From Macrostomum hystrix (Eukaryota; Animalia; Platyhelminthes): a DNA stretch of 64,000 bases. The stretch lies in contig CATNEN010000003.1 of NCBI GenBank assembly GCA_950097015.1, positions 11,656,001 through 11,720,000 of the forward strand, in the 5' to 3' direction. The notes beneath the pieces are model-generated. The model saw only the letters and a list, made by a program, of their open reading frames with translations. It made no database searches and was not told the DNA's origin. Shown here one piece after another: positions 3,001 through 56,511 of this stretch; the stretch's first letter is position 1; each line of letters starts with the position of its first letter. The position numbers were made by a program, and so were the translations under genes.

Positions 3001-3123
3001 TTGGGTCAGTTAGAGATTGGGTCAGTTAGAGATTGAGTCAGTTAGAGATTGGGTCAGTTAGAGGATGGGTCAGTTAGAGATTCGGTCAGTTAGAGAATGG
3101 GTCAGTTAGAGATTGGGCCAGTT
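1..3123. repeat. 16-bp satellite (GTTAGAGATTGGGTCA / GTTAGAGATTGTATCA), intronic in SLC1A-like gene A
   Basis: Continuous 16-bp periodicity; ends ~35 bp from the GTGAGT donor at 3158 (-). Confidence 0.98.
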
Positions 3124-3158
3124 GCTTTTTTGGTCATTAGATTGCACCGAGTACTCAC

Positions 3159-9100: not shown

Positions 9101-10495
9101 CGGAACCCTGCCGAAGGCGGCTGGAACCCGGAACCTGATATCCAGCGGCCAGACGCAGCGGCACCACCGCAGCAGACCGCTGAAGCTACACCGGAGCCCC
9201 GACGAAGCTGCAGGTCGACCAAGGGAGTCGCCCCAGACCGACTGTCTCCTCGTTGGTGATGAGGGGATGTTGTATCGTGACTTGACTTGAAGTGCGCAGT
9301 GTGGGGCTGCACCCCAATTGTTATTGGCGCTGAGTTTAGGACTGCTTGCTCTCTCCCCGCCTGCTCTGTCAGTCAATGTACGCTTATGCCTAACCGTCTA
9401 ATCTATTAGCTGATGCTTTACTCGTATCTGCATGTACATCTATGTGCAATGCCAACTATAATAAATAACAACCTCTCGCCCATTTGCGGCTCAAGTTTGG
9501 CTAGCCAGCCACGACACGACAGAAAGGTCTAGTTTAAACACTTATTTAGGCACTTTTACAGCGGTTTAAGGTCTCAATATTCAGCTCCTAACTCCTGGAT
9601 GCTTTATAACTGGCTGCAACAACCCCTGTCCTCAGGGAGTGTCTTCTCATACCTCTAACCCTGCTCATTTATAACTGGCTGCAACAACCCCTGTCCTCAG
9701 GGAGTGTCTTCTGTTACCTCTAACCCTGCTCATTTATAACTGGCTGCAACAACCCCTGTCCTCAGGGAGTGTCTTCTCTTACCTCTAACCCTGCTCATTT
9801 ATAACTGGCTGCAACAACCCCTGTCCTCAGGGAGTGTCTTCTCTTACCTCTAACCCTGCTCATTTATAACTGGCTGCATCAACCCCTGTCCTCAGGGAGT
9901 GTCTTCTACCACCTCCAAACCCAGCTCATTTATAATTGGCTGCAAAACCCCCACTTCCCAGTAAAAGTTTTCTCCCACTCCGAAAGCCTTCTGTTGTTCG
10001 ATTGCTTGCTCACTTACGTTCCGAGCTAAAAGTAAAAATGACCAAACAGAAAAGCACGAGCAAGCACGAACCGGACACTAGTGAGGAGAAAAGCAACGGA
10101 AAAACCACCAGGTTGAGCATGTTGATCAGCAATTCACCCGGTAAGCCGATAAGCTGGACAGTCAGTTCTCTGGGCTCTATTCGGCTAATCGAAAGACCAA
10201 CTGGCACAGCAAGAATCATTGACAACAGTGTGAGAGCTGACAAAATATTTTCTGGCTCTTTCAGGGCGCCAAGGCAAGTGAAGGAAAATTTCCGATTTTG
10301 CAACGAGCTCACTTTAGTTGTACAAGTACTTTCCGAGGTCTCCGAACGGCTCCTTGAACGGTTTTCTGGTAACTCAAGGTCCAGATAATAAATGGACGAT
10401 TTTTGCTTATTATACACCTTGGCAATTTTCTCCAGTTCCTGTGGTGTCCAGTTAGGAAGCACTTTATCTTCTTTGATTTCTTGGAATTGTCTCAT
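3159..10495 (-). CDS. SLC1A/EAAT-like (dicarboxylate/amino acid:cation symporter) gene A, copy 1, N-terminal exons 10072-10495, 4918-5140, 3362-3486, 3159-3285; continues off the left edge
   Basis: GT-AG introns with consistent phases join [45 protein letters not shown]|[12 protein letters not shown] and EDMNLL|[16 protein letters not shown], which match SLC1A TM2-TM5 motifs. Start Met (MRQFQ, 10495) is tentative. Confidence 0.85.
3574..4820. repeat. 41-bp minisatellite (ATCAAGGGATTTGGATTGCTAATCTACTCCATGCAGAAGGT), ~30 copies, intronic
   Basis: 41-bp period, located between exons 3362-3486 and 4918-5140. Confidence 0.97.
5166..5419 (+). repeat. 5' LTR of Gypsy copy 1
   Basis: TGTTGTATCG...CACGACA; contains TATAATAAA. 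Confidence 0.95.
5420..9259 (+). CDS. Gypsy gag-pol polyprotein interrupted by one in-frame TAG (7826-7828)
   Basis: Tandem zinc knuckles CRSCGLQH..C and [10 protein letters not shown]; protease LDSG; RT YQDD; RNase [16 protein letters not shown]; integrase [13 protein letters not shown] and [10 protein letters not shown]. ORFs 5420 and 7838 are in the same frame. Confidence 0.93.
9268..9521 (+). repeat. 3' LTR of Gypsy copy 1
   Basis: Matches the 5' LTR; followed by TSD GAAAG. Confidence 0.95.
9603..9945. repeat. 65-bp minisatellite, ~5 copies, intron 1 of gene A
   Basis: Unit TTATAACTGGCTGCAACAACCCCTGTCCTCAGGGAGTGTCTTCTCTTACCTCTAACCCTGCTCAT. Confidence 0.95.
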
Positions 10496-17179: not shown

Positions 17180-18788
17180 TTACTCGTTCGATTTTCGCTT
17201 TCTCTGCAGCCTTTTTGCCTTTTTCTGCGGCTGCTCCTCGCCAGGTCTCTCAATATCTTGGTCTTGGCGATCTTCACCTTGGTCTTGGCGATCTTCACCT
17301 TGGTCTTGGCGATCTTCACCTTGGTCTTGCCGATCTTCACCTTGGTCTTGCCGATCTTCACCTTGACTTCTCAGCCTCTCAATCTTCTGCTGCATCCACC
17401 CCGGCAGCCGGCACAGCTCGTGAGTGATTCTTCTGCGTAGCCGCCGCAGCAGCTCCAGATCGCCGCAGATCGCCGCAGCAACCAGCAGCTCCTGCTCATC
17501 CGCATCTTCCCTCTGAGCCACATCTCGTATCCAGTCCTGATCGCTCCCGTCTCCTGCTGCTGTCAGCTCATTGCGAAGAGCCCGCAGCAGAGCGTCAAAG
17601 TTCATGTATAAGTATGTGCCGTAGTTCTCCATCCGCAGCGGAAAGCAGTCGGCAAAGACTTCGTGCTCAATCGGCAGCTTCGGTCGCTCGTCAAACACAA
17701 AGCAGAATTTCCAGGCGGAGTCTCGGCTCCTCAGGTGCTGCCACACAAAGTCCGCAGTGGCCTCACTCGCCGACCTCTCAGCTCCCCAATCGATGCCTCT
17801 GCTCGCACTGAACGGCCCGCAGTCGCTCACAACTCTCGCTGCACTGAGTCGGTCGCCGAACTTCAGGCAGGCCAGCGCTCTGAGAGACTGCCGCGCTGAT
17901 CGGGCGCAGTCTGGCAGTTTGTTGATCAGCTCTGCGAGACTCTCTCGGGACTGCTGGCTGCGGTCTCCATCGGACAGACGAAGCACCGACTCTCTCACGA
18001 TGTCGTAGATCTCGTGGAACTCGCATGTCTTGGCTTCTGACACGGGTCTGTCATAGAGTAGAGGCAGGATGAGGAACGGGTGGAAGTGGAATCGGCCCGA
18101 TTTGGTGACGGGTCGCAGACTGTCCTCGAACTGCAGCAGCAGCTGAGGCAGCTCAGCCATGGCGTCTCTCAATGCACCGGCTGCCCGATTCAACGCTTCG
18201 CTCACTCCCTCAGCTGATGTGGGCGACTTCAAGCCTTTCAGGTACACAGCGGCATTGCTCAGGAAGAAGTGCTCCAGGATCCGACCGTCAGGTGTGTCTG
18301 ATCTGCAGCCGCTCTCCACACCGTCAAGCAGCATCTGCAGCGAGCGTCTCGTGAGACTCACGAGATTCTCCGGCTTCCACTGCTCAGCCGGTGTCTCCTC
18401 CAGCATTCGGAACGTGACGGTCTTTGCGTGATAGGACTTGAAGCCGACGTTTGAGATCTTCTTCTTCAGCAGCCACTTGAGTGTGACGAACAGCTGGCCT
18501 TGCAGAGTGCTGAGACTCCGCAGCAGTCGCCTCTCCAGGAAGCTGCTGCTCACTCGGAGCTGCTGGCCCCCATTTCGGGAGGAGCTGCGTGCACCACGTG
18601 ACAGGGCGATGAGGCAGAGGTGAGGTCTCGCTGGAGCGACTGCAGCACGGACTGGGGGATGTTGGAGTCGGAGACTCTTGATGGCTGCAGCGGCTCGATG
18701 GGAGGGTAGCGGCAGAGGCGGCGGGCGATGACTTCGTCCACAGCCGGTCTCAGGGTGGAGCCATCTTGAGTCTTGGCTGGTTTGTCGG
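17180..18788 (-). CDS. Mab-21/cGAS-like C-terminal exon, copy 1; frameshifted by a G5 versus G6 homopolymer
   Basis: 1609 nt against 1610 nt in copy 2: ATGGGGGCC versus ATGGGGGGCC. Ends in (QGEDRQD)5 and a basic tail [11 protein letters not shown]. Confidence 0.88.
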
Positions 18789-21700
18789 CTGGAAAAATGG
18801 GAAATGCGAGAAATATGGAAAATGCCATCAGATTTCAAGTTGATAGACACAAAATATTTCTCGATAATCTAAAAAGGAAAAAATGCAAAGATGGTTTGTA
18901 GCTGCGATTTAAGAAAATAGTGCAGACTAGAAACTTTTGCCCCCTACGGAGGGGAGCACGTGCACGATAATTTTCAATTCTTCCTTGCTTCTTTAGATTC
19001 TTATGGGTATTTTTCCTGAGCACTGTATACAGCTCTTCAGTCCATGTATTGGGGAGGTCACCAGCTCACTCAAATTTCTACTGTAACCTTCAGCTGGCTG
19101 AACTGAATAAATACGAGGTTATGATTCTAGCTCTTGGACAAGCATCGTTTCCTCAGGCTGAGATTCGAACTCCCGGCGTCTCTGCCAGAAGCTTCCAAGC
19201 TGTACTAATAATATTTATAGCATAAGAGTGGATGCATTCAACTTAGAAAGTGAAAGTTTACTTAAGAGGGACCACGAAAAATGATATAATTAAGTTAGAA
19301 CTCCTTGAGTGTCAAGTTACAATGTGACTATTGCAAAGCTGCAATCATTTGGTCAGTGTCGCAGAAATGGGCCGAATGGGTTAATCTTCAGATGTAGCCA
19401 ATCGGCGGGGTTTTCCTGCCAACTTAAAATAGGAAAATTTTCCTATCTACTGGATAACTAGCTTCTATATTGCTTGTAAGAATGGGCTGTTCGGAGTATT
19501 GTTGAAAATCAATGGACATGTACTGGCATAATTAAAGAATCACAGAGAAAGAATTTTGTAAAAACGGCAAAAGAATATAATAGATTAGAAATCACAGAAA
19601 TTTGCAATGACGCTTCCAAAAGCTGTGTACAACGGTTCAGTCCATGGACTGGGGAGGTCACCTCAGAAACTGTAATTTTAACTCGTATACGTTTGCTTCT
19701 ACCCGTTTTACTGGCTGCTGAATTGGAAACTTTCAGCTTTTAGGAACTTTCGTTTTGCCGTTCAAAGAGGAATTTCCCAAATCAGGTTCACAACTTATTA
19801 CTTTAATTTTACACACGTGACTGTGAAAGTATTGCGAGCCTAAGAAACAAAGACAAACTTTGCTTCTCTTCACTGAGTACACTGAGCGATGAGCGCTAAG
19901 CCTCTGTTTGGTTCGCAGAAGAAGTGAAATCGGCTATAAAAACAAACTTTATATTTTTGCTTTGAACTTTCTTGCTCTGGCTCTGGATTTCAAACCTGGA
20001 CTGAGCATTTGTTTGTTTTCCTTGTTTGTTGTTTGCTTTAGAAAGCCAAAGAGGATCAGCAGGCCAAACACATGCTCAATTCTTGTCCCAGCCATCCCGA
20101 CAGTCTCTGGCAGGAAATTCTCACCGAATCCGGAGCTCAGGATGTGGCCATTGCTGAGCTCCACTGTCTGAGCAGCCTCCACTCGGTCGCACTCGCACAC
20201 ATCTCTCGGGTGAATCGGCCTTCCTGGAATCAGCTGAATAACATCGATGTCAGAGTCGATGTCAGTTCCGCCATCCAGAGAGACCAGGCTGTTGCCCCAG
20301 GCCTCAGAGAAGCTGCCCACAGCGAACCAGCCGTCATCGTTCATTCTCTTCCTGAGAACATCCTGCAAGACGTCAGCCACAGCGATCTGCAAGGCGGCTC
20401 TGAAGTCCACGAATCCCGACTGAGAGAGCTTGGAGTGCAGCTGCTGGCTCAGCTCTGCGTCGCTGGGTGCGGCTCTGAAGGGTGAGAGGAGGCGGCAGTG
20501 CTGAGTTTCAGTGAGGCTGGGAGGCTCTGAAGGGTGAGAGGAGGCGGCAGTGCTGAGTTTCTGCACTGCAAAAGTGAAAAAAAAAATAAAATTAAATAAT
20601 TAAGAAAATTTTGAAAATATTTTGTAGGCTGTGCTTTTGCGAATGATACACTACGGAGTCAAAAGGTGTCACTTTCAAAAAACCCAAATCCATAATCCAA
20701 TATTTAATTCCTGCAATATATAATCCCAAATCTGTTTTTAAAAATACCAAACTTATAATATTGCATTCCAAACCTGTTCTATTGCATCCCAAAACTTTAA
20801 TATTGCTTCCCTGACATGTAATCTAGAATTCGACGCATGAAAAAATTGCATCCCAAGCTGTAATATTGTATCCCAAGCTGTAATATTGCATCCCAATCTG
20901 TAATATTGCATCCCAATCTGTAATATTGTATCCCAATCTGTAATATTGCATCCCAATCTGTAATATTGTATCACAAGCTGTAATATTGCATCCCAATCTG
21001 TAATATTGCATCCCAATCTGTAATATTGTATCCCAATCTGTAATATTGCATCCCAATCTGTAATATTGTATCACAAGCTGTAATATTGCATCCCAATCTG
21101 TAATATTGCATCCCAATCTGTAATATTGCATCCCAATCTGTAATATTGCATCCCAAGCTGTAATATTGCATCCCAAGCTGTAATATTGCATCCCAATCTG
21201 TAATATTGCATCCCAATCTGTAATATTGCATCCCAATCTGTAATATTGCATCCCAATCTGTAATATTGCATCCCAATCTGTAATATTGTATCACAAGCTG
21301 TAATATTGCATCCCAATCTGTAATATTGCATCCCAAGCTGTAATATTGCATCTCAAACCTGTAATATTGCATCCCAAGCTGTAATATTGCATCCCAAGGA
21401 ATAACATTGAATCTCTAACCAAGGACCACTGGAATACGTCGTTCTAGTATAGTAGTCCTTGTCCCTAACCTGTAGTATTACATCCCAAACCTGTAATTTT
21501 TTCCTCCAAAATCAAATCCCACATTCATAAACTGAGACTTAGGATAAATTCTTAAACTGGAGCCCATTCCGCTGTATTGGCAACTAAGCATGTTGAACAA
21601 GTTGAAAGATTATTAGCTCGTATTCAATTAAATAAAAACTGAAATTCTTTAAAAAATGTTTTTCACGAGGTTTTTACAGATTTTTACAAGGGGATAGCAG

Positions 21701-23851
21701 AGCACCTTTTTCTTCACGGATTTTGTGACTGTGTCCAACTGGAGGTGGATCAACTCAAGGCTTATCAAGGCTCATCTATTAGCATTAGTTTCCGTATTTC
21801 TTCGATTTCTTTCAAGCTGAATTTGTCAACATTCGATTCGACATTTTTCATTTTTCAATTCTGTAGCAAAAATATGTTAAGCTCTTGAGAACGAAACCGC
21901 TCGGAAATTAGACTTTTGTCTTCTTTGTTTAATAATCAAATTAATTAAATACATTAATAAAATAAGTTTCTTATATTTCTCTTTAGCCTTACGATTTATT
22001 TATCAGTACATACAACATACCCTGCTAATGTTACGAGTAATAATGGTACGCTCGTATGAAGATCAACTTTTCAGGACACAAGCTTATATAGTTCATAGCA
22101 GCAACATATGTAATAATACCAAAAGAAGAGCTTTGGATCTGCTTTAAATAAGAACGGTTACCATTAAAATTTTAGGGTGAAAAACTGAAGTGTATCTCCG
22201 TAGTGTATACATTTATTTTTAATCTACAATAACTGACTGACGCACAATCAGTTTGCAACATCGGTTCTCAGATTTCGAATCTAATAGCTCAGAGCACGCT
22301 GGCTGCGAATTGATTTTCAAAATGTCTCTGAAAACGGATTGCTCAGGTCAGTTTTACAGGAAACAGGAGCTCCTACCTGTTCTGCTTCTCAGGCAAAGGC
22401 GCGGAGGATCCACGGCTCAGCAGGTCAACCACTCGGTCATGGCCGACTTTCGTGGCGATTCGCAGAGCAGCTTCCAGCAAGTCCGGGCGCTGAACGACTT
22501 TCATGAGTGACTCGACAACACGGAGGTGGCCGTTCTGTGATGCAATGTAGAGAGGTGAGGAACCATCGAATGCTTGAAGATTGACGTCGGCTCGTGCTTT
22601 GATGAGTGAGTCGACCACCTCCTTATGGCCATTTTGTGATGCAATGTACAGAGGTGAGCAGCCATCGACTCCTTGAAGATTGACGTCGGCTCGTGCATTG
22701 ATGAGTGATTCGACCACCTCCTTATGGCCATTTTGTGATGCAATGTAGAGAGGTGAGGAGCCAGTTTTTCTTTGAAGATTGACGTCGGCTCGTGCTTTGA
22801 TGAGTGATTCGACCACCTCCTTATGGCCATTTTTTGATGCAATGTAGAGAGGTGAGCAGCCATCAAATGCTTGAAGATTGACGTCGGCTCGTGCTTTGAT
22901 GAGTGATTCGACCACCTCCTTATGGCCATTTTGTGATGCAATGTAGAGAGGTGAGGAGCCAGTTTTTCTTTGAAGATTGACGTCGGCTCGTGCTTTGATG
23001 AGTGATTCGACCACCTCCTTATGGCCATTTTGTGATGCAATGTAGAGAGGTGAGGAGCCAGTTTTTCTTTGAAGATTGACGTCGGCTCGTGCTTTGATGA
23101 GTGATTCGACCACCTCCTTATGGCCATTTTGTGATGCAATGTAGAGAGGTGAGGAGCCATCGACTTCTTGAAGATTGACTTTGGCTCGTGCATTGATGAG
23201 TGAGTCGACCACCTCCTTATGGCCATTTTGTGATGCAATGTAGAGAGGTGAGGAGCCAGTTTTTCTTTGAAGATTGACTTTGGCTCGTGCATTGATGAGT
23301 GAGTCGACCACCTCCTTATGGCCATTTTGTGATGCAATGTAGAGAGGTGAGGAGCCATCGACTTCTTGAAGATTGACTTTGGCTCCTGCATTGATGAGTG
23401 AGTCGACCACCTCCTTATGGCCTTGCTGTGATGCAATGTAGAGAGGTGAGGAGCCAGTATTTGTTCGAAGATTGACGTCGGCTCGTGCTTTGATGAGTGA
23501 TTTCACCAGTCGGTGGTGACCATATGCAGATGCAATCCACAATGCTGTCGCCCCTCTCCAGTTCTGCTTATCTACATCCGCATTGGCTCGGATGAGTCTC
23601 ACCAGAATTTCATGTCTTCCTAATCGGCAAGCGAGCATTGCTGGAGTATAAAATGAGTCTTCATAGGCGATGAAGGCATCGAGGCTCCCGCCGCTGACAA
23701 TGAAACGCTCAACGACCTCCACTCGGTCACCTCTGATGGCTGCCAGCAGCTCTTCGTCGGTGAGTTCTGCGTCTTCTTGCTGCTCTGAGGAATGAACTGA
23801 GTTCATCAGGTACACCAGGACAGCCGTGAGTATTCTCAGCAAGGGAAACAT
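17180..23851 (-). CDS. Predicted ankyrin-repeat + Mab-21/cGAS-like nucleotidyltransferase (cGLR) fusion, ~1158 aa; exons 22377-23851, 20125-20516, 17180-18788 (1-nt frameshift near 18570 in this copy)
   Basis: The ANK ORF ends exactly at the donor AG|GTAGG (phase 2). The acceptor CCTCCCAG|C at 20517 is in frame. Exon 2 carries AVGSFSE...DIDSDIDV and the donor G|GTGAG. Exon 3 starts after TTTTCCAG and carries [26 protein letters not shown] and LEHFFL, typical of Mab-21 domains. Confidence 0.75.
20125..20516 (-). CDS. cGLR nucleotidyltransferase catalytic exon
   Basis: [33 protein letters not shown] is a Pol-beta-superfamily GS...DhD motif. Confidence 0.85.
20845..21398. repeat. 20-bp minisatellite (TAATATTGCATCCCAATCTG), in the ANK-cGLR intron
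   Basis: 20-bp period. Confidence 0.96.
22373..23851 (-). CDS. Ankyrin-repeat exon (~13 repeats, 10 nearly identical at DNA level) with hydrophobic N-terminus
   Basis: 33-aa repeats [30 protein letters not shown]; 99-bp DNA period; N-terminus [21 protein letters not shown]. Confidence 0.95.
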   Translation of the reverse strand: MFPLLRILTAVLVYLMNSVHSSEQQEDAELTDEELLAAIRGDRVEVVERFIVSGGSLDAFIAYEDSFYTPAMLACRLGRHEILVRLIRANADVDKQNWRGATALWIASAYGHHRLVKSLIKARADVNLRTNTGSSPLYIASQQGHKEVVDSLINAGAKVNLQEVDGSSPLYIASQNGHKEVVDSLINARAKVNLQRKTGSSPLYIASQNGHKEVVDSLINARAKVNLQEVDGSSPLYIASQNGHKEVVESLIKARADVNLQRKTGSSPLYIASQNGHKEVVESLIKARADVNLQRKTGSSPLYIASQNGHKEVVESLIKARADVNLQAFDGCSPLYIASKNGHKEVVESLIKARADVNLQRKTGSSPLYIASQNGHKEVVESLINARADVNLQGVDGCSPLYIASQNGHKEVVDSLIKARADVNLQAFDGSSPLYIASQNGHLRVVESLMKVVQRPDLLEAALRIATKVGHDRVVDLLSRGSSAPLPEKQNR

Positions 23852-24002
23852 TTTGCAGGTGTCTGCTTGTGGGTTGGGAAAGTGGCAAATAAGGTCGAGT
23901 AGGTCAGCTCAGCCTTTGGCTTGAGACTTTGCTTTTGCTGTCCGCAGCAGCCAACCAGAAGCGTTCTTTGCTGCTGAAGTCTCATTGGGTGCTGAGCTGC
24001 TC

Positions 24003-25596
24003 AGAGAAGAGAAGACGAGAAGAGAAGAGGAGAAGAGAAGAGGAGAAGAGAAGAGAAGAGGAGAAGAGAAGATAAGAGAAGAGAAGAGAAGAGAAGAGAA
24101 GAGAAGAGAAGAGAAGAGAAGAGAAGAGAAGAGAAGAGAAGAGAAGAAGAGAAGAGAAGAGAAGAGGAGAAGAGGAGAGGAGAGAAGAGAAGAGAAGAGA
24201 ATAGAAGAAGAGAAGAGAAGAGAAGAGAAGAGAAAAGAAGAGAAGAGAAGAGAAGAGAAGAGAAGAAGAGAAGAGAAGAGAAGAGGAGAAGAGGAGAGGA
24301 GAGAAGAGAAGAGAAGAGAATAGAAGAAGAGAAGAGAAGAGAAGAGAAGAGAAGAGAAGAGAAGAGAAAAGAAAAGAAGAGAAGAGAAGAGAAGAGAAGA
24401 GAAGAAGAGAAGAGAAGAGAAGAGGAGAAGAGGAGAGGAGAGAAGAGAAGAGAAGAGAATAGAAGAAGAGAAGAGAAGAGAAGAGAAGAGAAGAGAAGAG
24501 AAGAGAAAAAAAAAGAAGAGGAGAAGAGAAAAGGAGAGAAGAGAAGAGAAGAGAAGAGAAGAGAAGAGAAGAGAAGAGAAGAGAAGAGAAAAGAAGAGAA
24601 GAGAAGAAGAGAAGAGAAGAGAAGAAGAGAAGAGAAGAGAAGAGAAGAGAAGAGAAGAGAAGAGAAGAGAAGAGAAGAGAAGAGAAAAGAAAAGAAGAGG
24701 AGAAGAGAAAAGGAGAGAAGAGGAGAGGAGAAGAGAAGAGGAGAAGAGAAGAGGAGAAGAGAAGAGGAGAGAAGAGGAGAAGAGAAGAGAAGAGGAGAAG
24801 AGGAGAAGAGAAGAGAAGACAAGAGAAAAGAAGAGAAGAGAAGAGAAGAGGAGAGAAGAGGAGAAGAGAAGAGAAGAGGAGAAGAGGAGAAGAGAAGAGA
24901 AGAGAAGAGAAGAAGAGAAGAGAAGAGAAGAGAAGAAGAGAAGAGGAGAGAAGAGAAGAAGAGAAGAGAAGAGGAGAAGAGAAGAGAAGAGAAGAGAAGA
25001 GAAGAAGAGAAGAGAAGAGAAGAGAAGAGAAGAGAAGAGAAGAGAAGAGAAGAGAAGAGAAGAGAAGAAGAGAAGAGAAGAGAAGAGAAGAAGAGAAGAG
25101 GAGAGAAGAGAAGAAGAGAAGAGAAGAGGAGAAGAGAAGAGAAGAGAAGAGAAGAGAAGAAGAGAAGAGAAGAGAAGAGAAGAGAAGAGAAGAGAAGAGA
25201 AGAGGAGAGGAGAGAAGAGAAGAGAAGAGAATAGAAGAAGAGAAGAGAAGAGAAGAGAAGAGAAGAGAAGAGAAGAGAAAAGAAAAGAAGAGAAGAGAAG
25301 AGAAGAGAAGAGAAGAAGAGAAGAGAAGAGAAGAGGAGAAGAGGAGAGGAGAGAAGAGAAGAGAAGAGAATAGAAGAAGAGAAGAGAAGAGAAGAGAAGA
25401 GAAGAGAAGAGAAGAGAAAAGAAAAGAAGAGGAGAAGAGAAAAGGAGAGAAGAGAAGAGAAGAGAAGAGAAGAGAAGAGAAGAGAAGAGAAGAGAAGAGA
25501 AAAGAAGAGAAGAGAAGAAGAGAAGAGAAGAGAAGAAGAGAAGAGAAGAGAAGAGAAGAGAAGAGAAGAGAAGAGAAGAGAAGAAGAGGAGAAGAG
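24003..25596. repeat. (AAGAG)n polypurine microsatellite, ~1.6 kb
   Basis: Almost exclusively A/G. Confidence 0.98.
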
Positions 25597-27049
25597 GAGT
25601 GATTCTTCTGCGCAGCCGCCGCAGCAGCTCCAGATCTCCGCAGATCGCCGCAGCAACCAGCAGCTCCTGCTTATCCGCATCCTCCGTCTGAGCCACATCC
25701 CGTATCCAGTCCTGATCGCTCCCGTCTCCTGCTGCTGTCAGATAATTGCGAAGAGCCCGCAGCAGAGCGTCAAAGTTCAGGTAGAAGTAGTTGCCGTAGT
25801 TCTTCATCTGAGACAGAAAGCAGCCGGCAAAGACTTCGTGTTCAATCGGCAGCTTCGGTCGCTTGTAAAACTCGAAGCAAAATTTCCAGGCGGAGTCTCG
25901 GCTCCTCAGGTGCTGCCACACAAAGTCCGCAGTGGCCTCACTTGCCGACCTCTCAGCCCCCCAATCGATGCCTCTGCTCGCACTGAACGGCCCGCAGTCG
26001 CTCACAACTCTCCGGCTTCCGAGATTCTCCGGCTTCCACTGCTCAGCCGGTGTCTCCTCCAGCATTCGGAACGTGACGGTCTTTGCGTGATAGGACTTGA
26101 AGCCGACGTTTGAGATCTTCTTCTTCAGCAGCCACTTGAGTGTGACGAACAGCTGGCCTTGCAGAGTGCTGAGACTCCGCAGCAGTCGCCTCTCCAGGAA
26201 GCTGCTGCTCACTCGGAGCTGCTGGCCCCCCATTCCGGGAGGAGCTGCGTGCACCACGTGACAGGGCGATGAGGCAGAGGTGAGGTCTCGCCTGAGCGAC
26301 TGCAGCACGGACTGGGGGATGTTGGAGTTGGAGACTCTTGGTGGCGGCGGGCGTCGACTCGGTCCACAGCCGGTCTCAGGGCCCAGCCTCTTTGAGTCCA
26401 GGCTGGGTTGGAGGCTGGAGAAATGGGAAATGCGAGAAACATTGCAAATTCCATCAGATTTCAATTAGAAACAAAACTAATTTTCAATTGTATTTCATGT
26501 CTGTTGTCTGATGTAAAGAAATAGAAATAAAACAAAATTTAGAAACTTTTGCCCTTTCTCAAAGAGGGACAAAGAGCAACTCGAATGAATCGTCTGGGCT
26601 CCCCGAAGATGGGCAACCATTGCTAGTTAAATAACAGTTTATAGCTAATGTGCAGGATTCATGCAAAGTGGCACGAGCAACAACTCCTGTCAATGAGTGA
26701 TTTAAGTGCAACAAAGAATATGATATTAGATTTTGGCGTATAAAAATCAATAAGTACAATGAATGAATATAGTATCATTATTCACTGAGTTCACTGAGCG
26801 ATGAGCACTAAGCCTCTGTTTGGTTCCCAGAGGAAGCGCGCCGAAAGAAAAATCACACTTTATTTGCGAAATTTCTTGCTCTGGCTCGGATTTTTAAATC
26901 TGGACTGAACATTTGCTTGTTTTCCTTGTTTGTTGTTTGCTTTAGAAAGCCAAAGAAGATGAGCAAGCCAAACATATGCTCAATTCTTGTCCCAGCCATC
27001 CCGACAGTCTCTGGCAGGAAATTCTCACCGAATCCGGAGCTCAGGATGT
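25597..27049 (-). pseudogene. Third, decayed cGLR copy (exon remnants 27025-27049 and 25597-26414)
   Basis: Homologous to 17430-18788 and to the 19870-20144 intron/exon junction. Has a frameshifting deletion after ARR, a ~0.5-kb deletion between KPENL and RVVSD, and a 3' end replaced by (AAGAG)n. Confidence 0.88.
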
Positions 27050-29201: not shown

Positions 29202-32200
29202 CTACACGATTTGCAAGAAGCTGTTAACTAATACTCTTATTTGAAAAGTACTCTTCCTTGTTAACTTACCTTCGTCGATTTCTTTCAACCCTTCAGATAT
29301 GCCGCTGTTGGGAATCTCCGAGGGGCTCTCTTCTTCAAATTTGCAAATGTGCTGCAGAATCGCTGCACAAAATACATTGCCCATGACATTGACGACTGTG
29401 CCGAATCTATCTCTGCAATTTTGGGGGTTATAATTTGTGTAGACACGGTATAATTTACTCGATAGTCAGCTTTTGAGGTACGTGATTGTAGTGACCGCTT
29501 GTTACTAACACTGCAAGACAGATACCTACCAGTTGGACAGAGATTTTATCCATTCAGATTCGCTGAGATCCACGAGTTAGAAAATAAATGCTACATTGCA
29601 TAGATTGTCTATGCGTTAGAGCTAGGGTACTTAGAGGGTACTACGATAAGGAGGAAATTCATCTTATGAGACGTCGATCCGGGCTCTTCGCAGCAGCTGT
29701 CACAATCCAAGGAAAGAATGTTCTGTTTACAGGCGATTGCGGCCGCCCACTGCGCCCACTGCTGGTCAGAGACTGTCAGCTGCATGGCCACTCTTGAAGC
29801 GTTCAATCCAGCCATAAATGGCCCTCAGTTTAAGACCACTGTCTCCATGTTGCTCTTGAAGATGATCAGCAATCCAACTGGCATTCCAGCCTGCAGTCCA
29901 CATTGCAAAAATCTGGCTGCGTTGGCTCTCGACGCTGTGCACTGAGCTCATCTTGGCAACAAGAGTGCAAAACTTCAGCGAAAACTTTGAAAACCCAGGT
30001 GCTCAAGTGGGCTCATGACGTGGGCTCTGCCAAACGAAGGACGCCATTTTCACCATAGACAAAAAGAGATACTGCATGTAACTGATAACTGATGTAAGCT
30101 TTTGCCATTCAATCTCAGTGTTTTGTCATTCATACTCAGCCCCCATAGAATTAATCCAGCCAGTTGGCGCAGTTTGGCCCATAGACTATCGCTCTGTGCC
30201 ATTCAATCTCGGGTTTTGTTATTCATACTCAGGCTTTATAAGCTCGGTCTCTCAAACGCAGTCCTCCCAAAGACAGCTAAATTACAAATTTCTTCCATTG
30301 CATTTGCTTACATGGCCCAACTTACATGGGCCATATGCTTACATGCATGGAGCGCCTGGGCCACGTTGCACTGGACACTCTGACGCCTCTGAAGGCCGCA
30401 AACTGGGAGATTGCCTGCAGCCGACTGTATCCACGGTGCATTATGCAAATTCCTTTTCTCTGAGTCACTGTTCTGATCCAAGACATTAACAATTCCGCTC
30501 AAATCCGTATGTTCCTCACCATGATGCTAGAGGTGTTTGACTTGTAATGTGTATGAACTGCATTATGTTTAACAAGTTTAACAAGTCTGTTTTTCGGTCC
30601 TGTGTTACATGAGCCCAGCTGAGGAATAATAACCTGTTCATTCCTTATCCACATTCCTTCTCCACATTAAAGCCTGAGTTTGAATGACAAAACACTGAGA
30701 TTGAATGGCAAAAGCTATACTATAAAGTATCCTTTTCGCTTCATTTCTTCTAAACATAAAAAACTATAACGATCCTTAAACACCAGTTTTCTACAAAGCA
30801 AAACTGTAGAAAGCGACTCAAGTAAGAGCTCCCTTTCAGGAAAATCATAATGAAACTAATCTCGGTCCTGGTCAAACACTGACGTTTACATACAACGGTT
30901 GGTCGTCTCTGGTTAGCGTGCATAGTCTGAAGAGCGACTTCTGTCTGACGTTTCAGTTCAAAACAAAAGGTGGGGCGCGGATGATGCTCGTGCTGTCTTA
31001 ATGACTTCACTGGCTGGTCAAGCTTTATTCTTTAATAGTACACCGTTGAAGCACAGGAAGCTCCGTCTGCCTTTATACCAGCTACTTACGTAGAAAGTTT
31101 TATTAAAGAGAAATGCTACACTCACATTAGCCAGTCAACTGGCCAAATCCAATTCCAGATCCAAAAAACGCGAACAGAATGCAAGCCGAAAGCAGAGGCC
31201 ACAATTCCTATTGTAGATGCAACGCCACCAGGTACGCAAGGCGTGCTAACAGAAGCAATCATTGCTAGAAAGCTGCGGATTGATATAGCGATATTTTGCT
31301 GGCTTAAACTGAGTAAGAGTAAGTTCATTCTAAATACATTTTTAAACAATGTTTGCATTGAAATCGTCACTTCAGTCTAACAGGTGACACTCCAGTCTAA
31401 CAGGTTACACTCCAGTCTAACAGGTGACACTCCAGTCTAACAGGTGACTTTTGACTTAGCTGCAGGGGGCATCTTCCGGATGCAGCGGGGAGGCGTTGCC
31501 GCCCATTCCGCTAGCCCCTGGCGACCACGGGCAACTAGAGCTGCGGTGTCGCGCAGGGGGATCCGGTGGTGCCGGCGTCCGCAGCGCGGTCCTCCTCCGG
31601 AGTGTCCAGGAGGTGGAGGGTTGCTCGCCCGGTGGCCCTCAGGTATCGGACGAGCTGGCAGATGTTCTCAGGCCTGAAAACGTCGGGGAGATCCGGGTTT
31701 GGGCCGAGATAGGTGAGCCGGTCCTGAGTGAAGGCGGGGCAGTCGCAAATAAAATGCTCTGCATCCTCAACATAGGAGAGGCAGAAGGGGCATTCCTCAC
31801 TGCGGATTTTGCCTTGCAGGAAGCGGTGCCTGGCGAAACAGCCATGGCCAGAGAGGGCCATGGTGACTGCCCTGATGTCCTTGCGGTTCAGTCCAAGCAA
31901 GGCTTTGCGAAGGGCAGTGGAGGGACAAGGGACAGCAGCGCGAGACTGCCGACAATCGGCGGTGTTGATCCATCTGTCCTTGTGCTTTGAGGTCACCCAC
32001 TGGTTAATCCGAGTGTTGACGACGGCGGTAGGGGTGGAGACCGCAGGCACAGGGCCAAAAAGCGAGCCCGTCGAACCGGCCTTGGCGAGGCTGTCGGCCA
32101 ATTCGTTACCAGGGTGGCCAGAGTGCCCTGGAATCCACCTTAGGGACACCTTGTTGTGGGTCCCTAAGCGGTTGAGTTGCGCGACGCAGTCGAGGACTGT

Positions 32201-35200
32201 GCGCGAGCAGGTGTGCGTGCGTCCAAGGGCATGGATCGCCGCCTGGCTGTCCGAGTGGAGGAAGATTTCTGCTCCATGGACGTTTTGGTAGATCAGCTCC
32301 AGGGCGCAGGAGCTGATGGCCAGAACTTCGTTCTGGAAAACAGTAGAGTTTATGCCGGTGTGCTGGGAGAAGGTCGCCACAGTTTTCCCTCCGGACATAA
32401 TGCAGTAGCCGAAACCAGAGACCGAGTTGATTTGCGATCCGTCGGTGAAGCAGTGAATTTCACGGGGTTGGCCGTGGTCACGTACTTCCTGGCGAGGCGG
32501 AATGCTGGTTTTGAATTTTTGCGGTGGGCACAGCGTCGACGGGATTCCGTCGGAGAGAATTTTGAGACCTCCTGCTGCGTCCAGGTCCCGTAGGCTGAGG
32601 TCGCCATGGGGCTGGAGGTTCCGCTTGCTGAAGGCAAGTTGCTTCCGGATGGAGATACCCGCGTCCAGAAGACGACGAGCCGTCTTCATCGCCTCCCCCT
32701 TGATAAAAAGATCTAAAGGGGGAAGGTCCAGGAAGGCATTCATGCCAGCGAAGGGAGTGGAGGGTGCCGCACTCATGATGGCTCGACAAGCACGGCCCTG
32801 CACCTTGTTTAGGGCCTCCAGGACCCCTTTGGTCTCCAGGGCACTATTCCAAATGAAGCCGGCAAAAGAGATGGCCGGTCTTACAATGGTAGTGTAAATC
32901 CACCAGAGACGGCGGGGGGTGAGGCCCCAGGTGGCGCCGAAGGCTCTGCGAATCTGCGCGAGCGTCGCAAGAGCTTTACGGGTTTTGAATTTGACGTGAG
33001 GTGTCCAGCTCAACCTGTGGTCGAGGATGACACCTAAGCATCTGGTTTGCTTCTCCATGGCGATTGGTTTGTCATAGAGAAGGAGAGGCTCAATCCTCCA
33101 GTTTCGTTTGCTGGTGAACATAATGGCGACGGTCTTGGACTCAGAGAGTTTGAGGCCGCAGCCATTGGCCCAGCGTTCGGCACGGTGGATGAAAGCTTGC
33201 AGAAGGTCTCTAAGGACCGGGGGAGACGGTCCGGCCACGGTGGCGGTGACGTCGTCAGCATAGCCGATTTTTTGGACCGGGTCCGGGTCAGGGCTGCAGA
33301 GCAGTTCGTCCATGACAAGGTTCCAAAGGATCGGACTGAGAACGCCACCCTGCGGGCCTCCCTTCTGGACATTCACAGAACGGGAGTGTCCAAGCAGGTG
33401 CGAGGTGGCAGTTCGGTGAGAGATCATATACATGATCCAGCGGGTGAGGTGCTCGTGCGTAGCCCGGCGTTCCAGGGCTCGCCTAAAGGCTCCGAAGAGC
33501 ACATTGTCGAAGGCACCATCAATGTCGAGGAAAAGCGAGAGAGCAAAACCGGTGCCAAGCACGGCGCGCTCCAGCTTGTCGACGATGGTATGCAGAGCAC
33601 TTTCGATGGAACGTCCGGATCGAAAGGCGTGCTGGTTGGCGGAGAGCGGGGAGTTCCTCAGCTCAACGTGAAGGAGGCGCCAAAGAACAAGCCTTTCAAG
33701 CAGCTTAAGAAAGAAAGATGTTAAGCTGATGGGGCGGAAGGCTTTGGCGGAGTGGTAGTCTCCCTTCCCAGGTTTGGGGATGAAGACGATAGTGGCTTCC
33801 TGCCAAGACCTGGGTACGTACCCGAGGGTGATACAGGCCTTGAACAGGTTGCAAAGGAGGCCGAGGAACCTGTCATTTTTAACCGCTTCATGTAGGAAGG
33901 CGGGGTAAATGTTGTCAGGTCCAGGCGACTTAAAAGGCGAGAAGGAGTTAGCAGCGCGAGCTGTCCGTTCTCTAGTGATAATAGTTGTCGCAAGGATGTG
34001 CCCACCCGGAGTGTGGTCCGGCGGGTCCTGAAGCGGCGCAGTCTGGGGGAAGGCGCTGGCGAGCATGATGTCCAGCGATTCGCCAGGATTCTCAGCAAGC
34101 CGGCCGTCCGGTCTTTTGATCACTGAGAGCTTCGACATTTTGTCAAGAGTGAGCGCTTTTACAACGCGAGAAGTTGGGCGGGCGCCCTCCAGCTCGGAGC
34201 AGTATTGGCGCCACTTTTCGGACTTCGCTTTCCTGGTGTCACGCTTAAAATCACGAATCGCATTCTGGTAGGCGGTCAGGTCAGCTGGGTCCTTGCTTTT
34301 CCGCGCAATCCGCTGGAGGGATTTGGCCTTTCGCCGGAGGGTTCCAAGCGCTGGGTTCCACCAGGGAGCGGATTTTTTGCCTTTGTAGGCTTTAAGAGGG
34401 CAAGAGGTTTCATGAGCTGTCAAGATGGTCATGCTGAGTAGATCAGCCAGATCGTCCACTTCTTGACAGGTGGCAGGAACAACGGATTTTGACTGGTTGG
34501 TCTGGCGCTTCACGGATTCCGCAAAGGCCGTCCAGTCAGTATTCCGGGCGTTCCTTTTCCACAGAATACCAGGCTTGGAGTAGGAGCTTAGCAACCGGAA
34601 ACGAATGAAGCGATGGTCAGACAGAGATTCCTCTTCGTCCCACACCTGCCAGTTCCTAATCAGAGGGATCAGGCCCTGAGAGGCGAGGGTGGCGTCAAGG
34701 ACCTCCGTCCATCGTCCATTGTCAAAGGTGGGTGTGCCACCCGAGTTGCAGAACTCAATATTGGTGGTGCAGATGTAGGCAAGGAGATCCTCGCCTCTGC
34801 AGTTGGAGGTAACACTGCCCCAGTGGGTGTGGTGGGCATTTATGTCGCCTGCCACCAGCAGCTCAAAGTCGCGGTCTGAGCAGTAGTCCACGAGGGAAGT
34901 GAGACTGGGCGGAACCGCAGGACCGTCGCCAGGAATGTATATAGAGGCGATGATGACGGTGCGGTTCGGGAGAATGTGGTTGGTTTGGATGACACAGAGG
35001 TCTTTGTCAGAGAGATCTGGTCTATACCAAGCTTTTAGATCGGTAGTCGCGAACACAGCAGCCCTGGGGTTTTGGGGCATGAAAAAACAGTCAAAACCAG
35101 CAGGAATGTTCGGAATCTTACCTTTCTTCGTCCAGGGCTCTTGGAGGAGGATGATGCCCGGTTTTTCGAAGTCCACCACACGCGCCAGGTTGGTCGAGGC

Positions 35201-38200
35201 CGCGATGCAGTGGTGCAGGTTCAGCTGCAGGAAGCTCACCCCAGGAGGGGCGGTCCGTGCGGCTATCTGCTGGCCTACGGCGAGTTGTTCAGGAGCGATT
35301 CCTCGTCCTCGCCGGTGTTTTGCCCGAGCTCCATCGGTTCCTCCTGAATCGGATCCAGAGTTGAGGCCGGGGCTGCCGCAACAGCGGCGTCCGTGTCCTC
35401 AACCCGGTTTTCCGCCGGGGGTTCCGATGAAGTATTGGGCCGGGTGGTGCTGCGGTGGCGTCCACTGTTGGGGTCCGACAGCTGTCTGGCGCGCTGAGTC
35501 AAGCCAGCACGGATGGTGTTACGGGCGGGTTTCCGGCCCTTACCACGTCCGCCTGTCGTTGCGGCTCGCGCGGCTTTGCCCCTGATAGGGTCCGCATCCT
35601 CGGAGTGGTCGTGACGATCAGGAGTCTGTGTTCCAGGGCGCAGGGGCCCGGCAGAGCTCTGGTTCGTCCGTTTCCGCTTTTCCGGGGGCGGCGGGCGAGT
35701 GGCGTCGGACTCGAAGCTGAAAATCTGCATTCGAGTGAGGCCTGCACTGATGTAGGACATGTCTGGGCAGCGGAGCATCCAGCTGTCCGACAATCCTAGG
35801 ATGGCCGTGAAACCGTCTCCACCAGGTCTGGTGATGGTTTCATGAACCACGACACCGTTTGCTGGCAGATCCGGGTGGATTGCCAACAGCAGGCGGCGCA
35901 GTTCTCCGGCGTTGGTGATGGCGCTGCGAGCTGGAATCCAAACACGATGACGGTGTGTCTGGGGGCGCTCGTCCTCCCTGTAGATAAACAGGTTGCCCAT
36001 TTCCGTGCCCCAGTCGAAGGATTTCAGCATCTCGAGGAGTTGCTGTCCGGACTGGTTGTCGGCAGGCTGGACAATGAGGGCTTGGTCCTGGATGTCGGTC
36101 TTCAGGACGTGCAGTACAGTGCCGCTCAGTGCCAGTTTGACCAGATGGGAGTCCAATCTGCGCCAGATCTGGTCGAGTTGCGCTGTTGTGAGGGGCGTCT
36201 CCTGGCCTCGGATAACCAAGGCCGGCTGCCTCTTTGCCATAGCAGCGTAAGTGCGCTTTGGCCTTGTGGTTTGGCCGGCGCCTCCCGCAACGGGCCCCCC
36301 AGCAGTCGTCGGAGTTTCCGGATGACTGTGAGAGGTTCCGCCGCGAGAGGAACCGGATGCCCCAGAGGCCTGGGCGGCACTTTTCCGCGCTTCCGGGTTT
36401 CCCGGACGGCGCGAGGAGTCCGCCTCCTTGTTGGGTGCCGGTTCCTCCGCGATGTTCGCAGAGTTGCCGGCCCCCTCCTCGGAGGCGGTGGTTGGCGCGG
36501 ATTTCGCAGCCAACCGTACTTCCTGTTTTCGCCGCCGGAATTCCTGGAGGCGGGCGAGGCTGCGGGCTTGCGTGGAAGGGGAGCGTTTGCTCTTTGATCC
36601 AGCCGCTCTGGTGTTTTCCTGAGTGGCGGAGGAGCAGGATGAATTTTGGGCGCCGGTGGAACCGGTGTCGCCCTGGCGCTGGTCCTGAGGATCTGCGTCG
36701 CCGGCCGGGGTCGGCGTTTCAGCAGGGTCCTGGGACGTGCTGGAGCTGTAGTGGGACTCCATAGGTCGCTGGAAAAAGAGAAAGAAGAGAATAAAAATAA
36801 AAACCGCTAATGGCCGGATAGACTCCCCGGACCTTTCAGCCCCTCAGCGCGGTGAGACCTTAGGCATAAGAGGACACCTAAAGCAGTGCCAGGCCCGCAG
36901 ACTGGCTGCGTACCCTGTTGAGGTCGAAGGGTGACACCTGTCCCTCAGAGCCGTAGCCAGAGGTACCTGATCACGCACAGGTGCACGAGCGCTGCGGACT
37001 GGCCGCATACCCTGTTAAGGTCAAAGGGTGACACCCTTCCCTCAGAGCCGTAGCCAGAGGTACCTGATCACGCACAGGTGCGCGAGACGCTGCGGACTGG
37101 CCGCATACCCTGTTAAGGTCAAAGGGTGACACCTTTCCCTCAGAGCCGTAGCCAGAGGTACCTGATCACGCACAGGTGCACGAAAACTGCGGACTGGCCG
37201 CATACCCTGTTAAGGTCAAAGGGTGACACCTTTCCCTCAGAGCCGTAGCCAGAGGTACCTGATCACGCACAGGTGCGCGAGACGCTGCGGACTGGCCGCA
37301 TACCCTGTCAAGGTCAAAGGGTAAACACCTCTCCCTCAGAGCCGTAGCCAGAGGTACCTGATCACGCACAGGTGCGCGAGACGCTGCGGACTGGCCGCAT
37401 ACCCTGTCAAGGTCAAAGGGTAACACCTCTCCCTCAGAGCCGTAGCCAGAGGTACCTGATCACGCACAGGTGCACGAAAGCTGCGGACTCGCCGCATACC
37501 CTGTTAAGGTCAAAGGGTGACACCTTTCCCTCCAGCCAGGGCTAGAGGTACCCAGTTTGGCCAGAGGCCCTGGATGGGTCATCCAGCGCTGTAGCCCATT
37601 CTAACAGGTGACACTCCAGTCTAACAGGTGACACTCCAGTCTAACAGGTGACACTCCAGTCTAACAGGTGACACTCCAGTCTAACGGGCGACACTCTGGT
37701 CTAACAGGTGACACCCTCATCTAATAAGTGACACTCTCGTCTAGCAGGTGACACCCTCGTCTAACAGGTGACACCCTCGTCTAACAGGTGACACCCTCGT
37801 CTAGCAGGTGACACCCTCGTCTAACAGGTGACACCCTCGTCTAACAGGTGACACCCTCGTCTAACAGGTGACACCCTCGTCTAACAGGTGAAACCCTCGT
37901 CTAACAGGTGACACTTTAGTCTAACAGGTGACACTTTAGTCTAACAGGTAACACTCTGGTCTAGCAGTGACACTGCTCAATGGTTTCTTGCTCAATTTCT
38001 CAATTTCCAATGTAGTTTTTATCAGTAACGAGAACACCCCAACCGGTGTGTACCTTGGTTTAGTGAGGTGAGAGGTTAGATCGAAGTTTAAATAGCAACC
38101 TTTGAAAACGTTGCATTAAAATATGATAAGCTTGAAATGAATTTTTCTACGACTCATACGCTTGAGTCAGTTGTGGTTTAGGTTGGTTATGTATGAGTTC

Positions 38201-56417: not shown

Positions 56418-56511
56418 TTGTAGAGAGTAGTAAAATGTGCAATTTGTTCAACTCGCTGATTAAAGTTATATTACAAAGAATCCTAAGACATAATTGTTTT
56501 TCTTTCGCTGG

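Follow-up and report, generated by a model that had tools for sequence, protein, structure and literature searches.

Near-identical ankyrin repeats with a variable binding face in an apparent ankyrin and Mab21/cGAS-like gene family of the flatworm Macrostomum hystrix

NOD-like receptors (NLRs) of fungi are known to carry ANK, TPR or WD repeats of high internal conservation (Paoletti 2007; Chevanne 2010; Dyrka et al. 2014, PMC4986451), and highly conserved repeats of this kind were found in only 0.8% of metazoan repeat proteins (Dyrka et al., PMC4986451). The fusion of ankyrin repeats with a cGAS-like receptor (cGLR) has been listed among the minor architectures of these receptors, one example being found in the coral Stylophora pistillata (Li et al. 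2023, bioRxiv 10.1101/2023.02.22.529553; PMC9980059). In our study, a stretch of 64,000 nucleotides of the flatworm Macrostomum hystrix (assembly GCA_950097015.1, contig CATNEN010000003.1, positions 11,656,001 to 11,720,000 of the forward strand; referred to here as the window, with positions counted from its first letter) has been analysed for an array of ten 99-bp ankyrin units encoded on its minus strand. On balance, the ten repeats are best regarded as forming the recognition domain in a member of a macrostomid gene family of very large size in which ankyrin repeats are combined with a Mab21/cGAS-like part.

The first-pass annotation of this DNA, made from the sequence alone, had likened the array to the concertedly evolving repeats of fungal NLRs, and the comparison was found to be apt (PMC4986451). 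Both systems show near-identity of the units at the DNA level, a variable repeat number (among paralogues in the flatworm) and concerted exchange within and between family members, and both form large, fast-turning families of presumed non-self receptors. In the fungal repeats a few positively selected sites are placed on the ankyrin concave face (inner helix and beta-hairpin), and the flatworm array has shown selected sites on the same face by a counting method. On the other hand, the fungal proteins contain a NACHT/NB-ARC NTPase whereas the flatworm gene would contain a Mab21/cGAS-like nucleotidyltransferase; the repeats are C-terminal in the former and N-terminal in the latter, and the host is here an animal. 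Moreover, repeat polymorphism of the fungal NLRs has been shown between individuals, whereas the repeat variation of the flatworm is known between paralogues. The ankyrin-fused cGLRs of Li et al. (2023) resemble the present gene in joining ankyrin repeats to a cGLR nucleotidyltransferase core, but they were described at the level of domain architecture only, and near-identical or hypervariable repeats are not mentioned there. A literature search found no paper on hypervariable ankyrin repeats of cGAS-like receptors, and the survey of Li et al. was the only one joining ankyrin and cGLR.

Tandem Repeats Finder detected a 99-bp period at 22527-23502 with 9.9 copies and 91% matches. In coding phase the ten units occupy 22484-23473 on the minus strand (residues 127-456 of the encoded protein, as delimited by the unit table), and with these in-phase coordinates the earlier description of ten units almost identical even at synonymous sites was borne out. 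The hairpin triplet is formed by codons 4-6 of each unit, which lie on the minus strand at 23456-23464 in unit 1 and 99 bases lower in each following unit, reaching 22565-22573 in unit 10. From unit 1 to unit 10 the triplets after NL(Q/R) are TNT, EVD, RKT, EVD, RKT, RKT, AFD, RKT, GVD and AFD, in exact agreement with the series read in the first pass, and the minor S/C and Q/K changes noted along with it are also present. As had been claimed, the variation is concentrated in the triplet. In units 1-9, seven of the nine nucleotide columns of the triplet are variable, whereas the 90 columns outside it include only 11 variable ones (Fisher p = 6e-5), and the mean pairwise difference per site falls from 0.472 inside the triplet to 0.043 outside it, an 11-fold difference. 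The low values include the framework third codon positions (0.076), so the units are homogenised at synonymous sites as well. The framework nucleotide identity inside the array is 0.957, and units 1-9 differ at few of the 33 residues over a length of about 300 residues, which places them above the limit of >85% over at least 100 residues used by Dyrka et al. (2014). A further suggestion of the first pass, that basic and acidic hairpins alternate along the array, did not hold, as 6 acid-base neighbour pairs were counted against 4.0 expected (p = 0.13), and 28 against 31 expected over all arrays (p = 0.81).

The ankyrin nature of the array is evident from the Pfam scan, in which Ank_2 scored 376.9 bits (cut-off 27.3, E = 4.5e-115) and Ank 309.1 bits in 11 stretches, and from phmmer alignments to designed ankyrin repeat proteins (DARPins) and ankyrin-1 with E = 1e-113 to 1e-126. 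In an AlphaFold model built from the single sequence (predicted local distance difference test, pLDDT, 67), every unit forms a helix pair, the loop between successive units contains the triplet, and helix 1 ends with positions 13-14. The other variable codons of this array encode D/E at position 21, N/K at position 25 and K/D at position 29, in helix 2 and the loop following it, and their variants extend over blocks of neighbouring units instead of switching from one unit to the next. The EVD and RKT hairpins are each found with both of the resulting framework haplotypes, D-N-K and E-K-D, which indicates recombination between the hairpin and helix 2.

The variability was further explored in 148 internal units of the 14 closest paralogous arrays. 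The highest entropy was obtained at position 5, the residue after the hairpin glycine (2.8 bits), followed by hairpin residues 1, 2 and 3 (2.26, 1.68 and 1.17 bits) and by positions 13 and 14 at the end of helix 1 (1.46 and 1.31 bits), in comparison to 0-0.3 bits at most framework sites. The three-residue 'code' of the first-pass annotation is therefore too narrow, since the variable set of the family comprises positions 1-3, 5, 13 and 14, with position 5 as the most variable. The hairpin is also variable in length, with three-residue forms (RNT, TNT, EVD, RKT) and four-residue forms (EKVH, EKVY and others), and the same hairpin types recur in different genes. When 19 arrays were profiled singly, including subfamilies only about 60% identical to the window array, positions 5, 13 and 14 were among the most variable framework positions in nearly all of them and the hairpin was variable too; the exception is the window's own array, in which the top framework positions are 21, 25 and 29. 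The framework and the hairpin types RNT and EKVx have been retained in Macrostomum lignano.

The register of these positions was taken from a phmmer alignment to a solved DARPin chain, according to which the triplet corresponds to positions 1-3, the S/C change to position 5 and the Q/K and N/Q changes to positions 13 and 14. The variable residues are hence at the ankyrin binding-face positions of the DARPin type, as the first reading had assumed, and the natural set of the flatworm nearly equals the engineered paratope. Like the DARPins, the flatworm arrays have a fixed consensus framework with diversity at a few surface positions. The internal repeats of the aligned DARPin chain differ at positions 2, 3, 5, 13, 14 and 33, whereas the flatworm set is 1, 2, 3, 5, 13 and 14; position 33 is nearly fixed and position 1 variable in the flatworm, and its hairpin has a length of 3 or 4 residues. 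DARPins also contain 2-3 internal repeats in comparison to up to 50 in the flatworm, where the array is natural, germline-encoded and would be attached to an enzyme.

The repeats of TAL (transcription activator-like) effectors offer another comparison, as these are tandem units of about 33-34 residues, almost identical in DNA, with variable di-residues, and one DNA base is read per repeat. The flatworm units are similar in being near-identical tandem units with a very short hypervariable patch, and it is in this sense that the word 'code' may be used for them. They differ in the fold and in the variable positions, and the reading of a linear ligand by one element per unit is a feature of the TAL repeats.

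The selective forces on the units were examined by counting differences within genes. The proportion of nonsynonymous differences (pN) at the six variable codons was 0.338 and the proportion of synonymous differences (pS) in the framework was 0.034, giving a ratio of 10 (bootstrap interval over genes 6.1-16.4); in the window array the corresponding values are 0.341 and 0.011. These counts show an excess of nonsynonymous change at the variable codons; the framework itself has a pN/pS of 0.7. At five of the six variable codons essentially one codon is used per amino acid throughout the family (at hairpin position 1 these are AGA, ACA, GAA, ATA, GCA, GGA and AAA), and pairs of units with the same residue differ in the codon in 0-3% of cases. 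The changes at the variable codons are almost purely nonsynonymous and fall in the first and second codon positions. This use of one codon per residue at the variable sites points to selection, and neither a relaxation of constraint nor a mutation hotspot confined to these sites would fit with it. The pS of 0.22 at the variable codons had at first brought old lineages or a hotspot of mutation into consideration, but these were set aside after a direct count, which traced this value mostly to path averaging and to the CAA/CAG split at position 13; the one-codon usage at the other five variable codons argues against targeted hypermutation.

Two units of the same gene were found to be separated by a framework nucleotide distance of 0.022-0.024, and two units of different genes by 0.054-0.058, irrespective of a shared hairpin. 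The distance thus follows the gene and not the hairpin type, as is expected from concerted evolution. The 148 units reduce to 101 different sequences, and in 13 cases a set of identical units is shared by two or more genes. Three copies on one contig (C18) are 98.7-99.7% identical in their 5' coding parts and 100% identical in their 3' parts, and carry 6, 10 and 9 units, the differences being gains and losses of whole units. Copies with flanks 97-98% identical have almost no unit order in common. Among the paralogues neither the repeat number nor the repeat order is fixed, and whole-unit insertions and deletions occur in copies whose flanks are 99-100% identical.

Block duplications were measured by lag analysis, as Tandem Repeats Finder is blind to periods above 500 bp. 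The long arrays were found to contain in-register duplications. In one array, a lag of 8 brings together 18 unit pairs, of which 8 reach 99% identity or more; another array has 13 such pairs out of 33 at a lag of 15, and a third array shows a lag of 7. The duplicated blocks comprise 7, 8-9 and 15 units. Together with the insertions and deletions among paralogues and the mixed framework haplotypes, these blocks lend support to the shuffling of repeats by unequal exchange that had been suggested. When the hairpin, position 5 and positions 13-14 are taken together as the binding-face 'word' of a unit, 74 distinct words are present against about 118 expected under free combination, which indicates that whole cassettes are reused; of 22 acidic hairpins, for example, 16 are accompanied by Cys at position 5. 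In M. lignano the proteins P0001 and P0002, which are 95% identical, differ over residues 1-260 at two residues only, and both of these are hairpin residues. From the comparison of paralogues, the evolutionary interpretation is well supported: the repeats appear to be homogenised by recombination, the variation of the binding face to be kept, and the units to be shuffled by unequal exchange.

The ankyrin array is contained as a whole in an open frame of 492 codons on the minus strand (22373-23851 in the open reading frame list). Exon 1 of the ankyrin/cGAS-like gene (22377..23851, minus strand) opens with the ATG at 23851 and closes at a good splice donor, AAC AG/GTAGGA, where the slash marks the exon boundary. 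From the reading of the sequence, the apparent stop TAG sits within this donor site, and the ending ...PLPEKQNR-stop is shared by the paralogous arrays. The exon begins with a hydrophobic segment (residues 1-22, 23786..23851, minus strand) which resembles a signal peptide or membrane anchor; it forms a helix over residues 2-19 in the model and is followed by an acidic stretch. This hydrophobic start is conserved in the paralogues, and a comparable one is present in M. lignano P0001 and P0028. Residues 23-126 (23474..23785, minus strand) comprise an N-terminal cap region and two divergent ankyrin repeats, as delimited by the unit table and the paralogue comparison, and close with a conserved KQNWRG...ALWIAS unit. 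After the ten units (22484..23473), a C-terminal capping repeat and a short linker (residues 457-491, 22377..22483, minus strand) complete the exon, with model helices at 456-469 and 472-481.

Downstream of exon 1, the predicted intron 1 (20475..22376, minus strand) was placed from its donor and acceptor sequences. A minisatellite inside it at 20756-21397 has a 20-bp unit in about 27 copies with 93% matches, and gives rise to long open frames on the minus strand that are spurious. The predicted exon 2 (20125..20474, minus strand), with the acceptor CCCTTCAG/ and the donor TTCG/GTGAGA, would encode a linker together with the beginning of the nucleotidyltransferase core. Local tblastn aligned residues 261-387 of M. 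lignano P0001 to 20527-20123 in this region with 60% identity. A 52-base direct duplication at 20474-20564 on the minus strand repeats the acceptor of exon 2 (CCCTTCAG/); the upstream copy (first exon base 20526) leads to a stop after six codons and the downstream copy (20474) is in frame. The predicted exon 3 (18788-17183, minus strand, with the stop codon at 17182-17180) would complete the Mab21/cGAS-like domain and add a long C-terminal extension to it. Near the end of this exon (about 17230-17340, minus strand) five tandem GEDRQDQ heptads are followed by a lysine-rich end.

When P0001 (871 amino acids) was mapped by local tblastn and splice-site reading, with the exons handled one by one, by reference, the three exons were found in consistent phase, and splicing of this particular copy into three exons is the arrangement we infer. 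The summed coding length of 3431 bases is one short of a multiple of three. In exon 3, tblastn placed P0001 residues 387-457 in one frame and residues 461-854 in another, 8 bases apart, and a base is lost in the G run at 18567-18571, which is G5 here and G6 in a paralogous fragment of the same window. The reading frame of the enzyme domain is not intact in this copy because of this frameshift, and the difference between G5 and G6 means that the copy is either freshly disabled or carries a homopolymer error of the assembly.

The genome of M. hystrix contains many relatives of both parts of the gene. The ankyrin exon gave at least 119 scored matches (1223 first-look candidates) and the cGAS-like exon at least 97 scored matches (1443 first-look candidates). 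In all of the 22 arrays that were segmented, which have 6 to 50 units each, a cGAS-like exon is present on the same strand 1.1-15.6 kb downstream; the ankyrin array is therefore a regular part of the gene family and not a free-standing gene. Some of the cGAS-like exons hold stop codons. In the protein database, the downstream open frame retrieved 24 relatives, all from M. lignano and up to 68% identical. Many of these join ankyrin repeats to a domain called Mab-21, with Pfam Mab-21_C recorded for several and the name of a Mab-21 domain protein given to others in UniRef, and the gene model of M. lignano P0001 runs from the ankyrin part into the Mab21-like part. Same-species proteins, as allelic variants, were sought in the protein database, where the specific relatives of the cGAS-like exon were all from M. 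lignano. The ankyrin query obtained only generic ankyrin arrays of not more than 56% identity there, the closest being from M. lignano.

The identity of the second part of the gene as Mab21/cGAS-like is weakly indicated by the sequences. Exon 2 encodes GSFSEAWGN...DIDSDIDV, with a G-S motif and acidic pairs as in nucleotidyltransferases, in a part that falls outside any alignment with a solved cGAS; the Pfam scan of exon 2 gave no family. A profile of nine relatives of the enzyme part matched in the PDB with cGAS chains only. A Foldseek search listed cGAS, the coral Sp-cGLR1, MAB21L1 and MiD51 as the rows of highest probability (0.6-0.92), none of them significant. When exon 1, both open frames downstream of it and the full-length M. 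lignano P0001 were scanned with Pfam, neither a NACHT nor an NB-ARC domain appeared, and the gene is consequently not an NLR.

A mechanism can be proposed from these features. The N-terminal ankyrin array of exon 1 would be spliced to a Mab21/cGAS-like nucleotidyltransferase encoded by exons 2 and 3. The 99- and 102-bp units, and blocks of them, are duplicated, deleted and exchanged in register through unequal crossing-over or gene conversion, which keeps the framework near-identical within a gene, synonymous sites included, and lets repeat number and order change quickly. Point substitutions on the concave face, at positions 1-3 in the beta-hairpin, 5, and 13-14 at the end of helix 1, appear to be kept by diversifying selection. 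The concave groove may then bind a variable ligand, probably a protein, from a pathogen or another non-self source, and ligand binding may control the attached cGAS-like enzyme and thereby a nucleotide signal. Ligand binding, enzyme activity and an immune role would be the functional side of this proposal. To the same side belong the new binding specificities and the combinatorial receptor suggested in the first pass, which may be a consequence of the unit shuffling. These functions gain in plausibility from the cGAS-like domain attached to the array and from the close parallel with the repeats of fungal NLRs.

Several observations weigh against this recognition-domain interpretation. The Pfam Mab-21_C score of exon 3 (18.6 bits) is under the cut-off of 24.1, the cGAS matches in the PDB are weak (about 60 residues, with E = 7e-4 to 2e-3), the model predicted for the enzyme part from a nine-sequence alignment is poor (pLDDT 52), and Foldseek with this poor model gave no match at E <= 0.001. 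The hydrophobic N-terminal segment is unexpected for a cytosolic sensor. The selection test consists of counts of the Nei-Gojobori type on recombining repeats and not of a codon model allowing recombination. The frame of exon 3 is broken, and the copy may make no enzyme. Finally, the only candidate for a STING ligand-binding domain in the genome is sub-threshold, with 25 bits in comparison to the Pfam cut-off of 27. This candidate is located at C2:9104529-9104996 on the minus strand, covers 3-145 of the 182 profile positions within an open frame of 337 codons, and is possibly a divergent receptor for the products of the enzyme family. The array looks like a fast-evolving recognition module in a copy which may itself be broken.

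A stronger form of the proposal would be that the family constitutes a germline repertoire of cGAS-like receptors which recognise protein or other non-nucleic-acid ligands directly through a DARPin-like groove, diversified by the shuffling of repeat cassettes. We consider this as a tentative possibility which is rather unlikely to be correct in full. In a more extreme version of it the reading would be modular, the binding-face word of each unit being matched to one segment of an extended ligand.

Alternatively, the array may be a target and not a sensor. The ankyrin part would then have a regulatory role, such as autoinhibition, oligomerisation or localisation, and its face would evolve to escape the inhibitors of pathogens. 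Diversifying selection on an exposed face and rapid turnover are equally expected under such a role, and the known cGAS-like receptors sense nucleic acids via the enzyme domain, most of them with no extra domain (bioRxiv 10.1101/2023.02.22.529553). However, the range of 6 to 50 units is hard to square with a fixed regulatory contact, and the escape from inhibitors would not obviously favour hundreds of gene copies with reshuffled arrays, and a target role is thus judged as unlikely. The family may otherwise serve recognition within the species, that is, allorecognition or sexual or sperm conflict in these hermaphroditic worms instead of pathogen sensing. The fungal NLRs with highly conserved repeats include allorecognition genes (PMC4986451; PMC12222747), and fungal het-type NLRs with similar repeats control the incompatibility between strains, with the same pattern of concerted evolution and hypervariable sites; but the output domain here belongs to a type with known roles in antiviral and antibacterial signalling, which leaves such a function improbable in our estimate.

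It may also be asked whether the pattern is a neutral by-product of a recent tandem amplification, with tolerant surface positions and many decaying pseudogenes. The exon 3 frameshift of this copy, the stop codons in some cGAS-like exons and the rather high framework pN/pS of 0.7 would fit with decay. Neutral change, however, cannot exceed the synonymous rate, and the variable-site pN is 10 times the framework pS with almost no synonymous variation in the variable codons. In addition, no ankyrin match of about 50% identity or more contains a stop, and the framework and hairpin types RNT and EKVx are kept in M. lignano, so that a neutral origin has very little probability. An artefact of assembly, with repeats collapsed or mis-joined from several paralogues and an unreal unit order, could be imagined for units 95-96% identical over 1 kb with many paralogues and an exon 3 G run prone to homopolymer error, but is hardly credible for an array whose frame is open through ten units and both caps, which has its own characteristic units and orderly framework blocks, whose kind (1-5 kb) is well within long-read lengths in an assembly of 220 Mb in only 42 contigs, and for which a public DNA run, maybe the source run of the assembly itself, holds 63% of the sampled words of a 6.7-kb stretch.

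The DNA around the gene has also been surveyed. Directly upstream of the ankyrin exon, at 23909-26464, lies a fragment of another cGAS-like exon with 87-99% protein identity to exon 3, interrupted by a 1.6 kb (AGAGA)n tract at 24003-25596. It is probably a remnant of a neighbouring family member, and the same arrangement of a fragment is found at the upstream paralogue (C3:11640508-11641143). Two copies of a retroelement of the long terminal repeat type, 99.1% identical and encoding protease, reverse transcriptase, RNase H and integrase, are located at 3943-9951 and 43770-49778, and a LINE-like element with endonuclease, reverse transcriptase and RNase H at 31535-36762. A strongly G-skewed satellite (GC skew 0.43-0.69) occurs twice, at 1-4451 and about 38400-44650, the two occurrences being about 90% identical. 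On the plus strand, a C-skewed stretch at 54105-56430 (GC skew -0.70) contains three overlapping open frames of about 750-770 codons; its sole Pfam match, BcsE, has no passing stretch and looks spurious, and the region is probably low-complexity repeat DNA. The gene family is placed in repeat-rich, recently rearranged DNA.

This study has considered a locus of limited reach in itself, as it adds one further, possibly disabled, member to the family. The size of the family in a flatworm is of note because a published survey found most platyhelminths to be without cGAS-like receptors other than Mab21-like proteins. Since the arrays vary at almost the same positions as engineers chose for DARPins, they represent a natural experiment in the design of ankyrin binders. 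The cGAS-like receptors are known as nucleic-acid sensors, and most of those in animals have yet to be assigned a ligand. In the present family the domain in front of the enzyme bears the marks of a protein-binding surface in rapid diversification, and these receptors may accordingly have a second mode of recognition that is directed at proteins. If this is true, the macrostomid family would be an animal counterpart of the fungal NLR repeat receptors and would add a new class of ligand for cGAS-like receptors, and it would show that the strategy of near-identical repeats with hypervariable contacts, documented mainly in fungal NLRs, arose in animals too.

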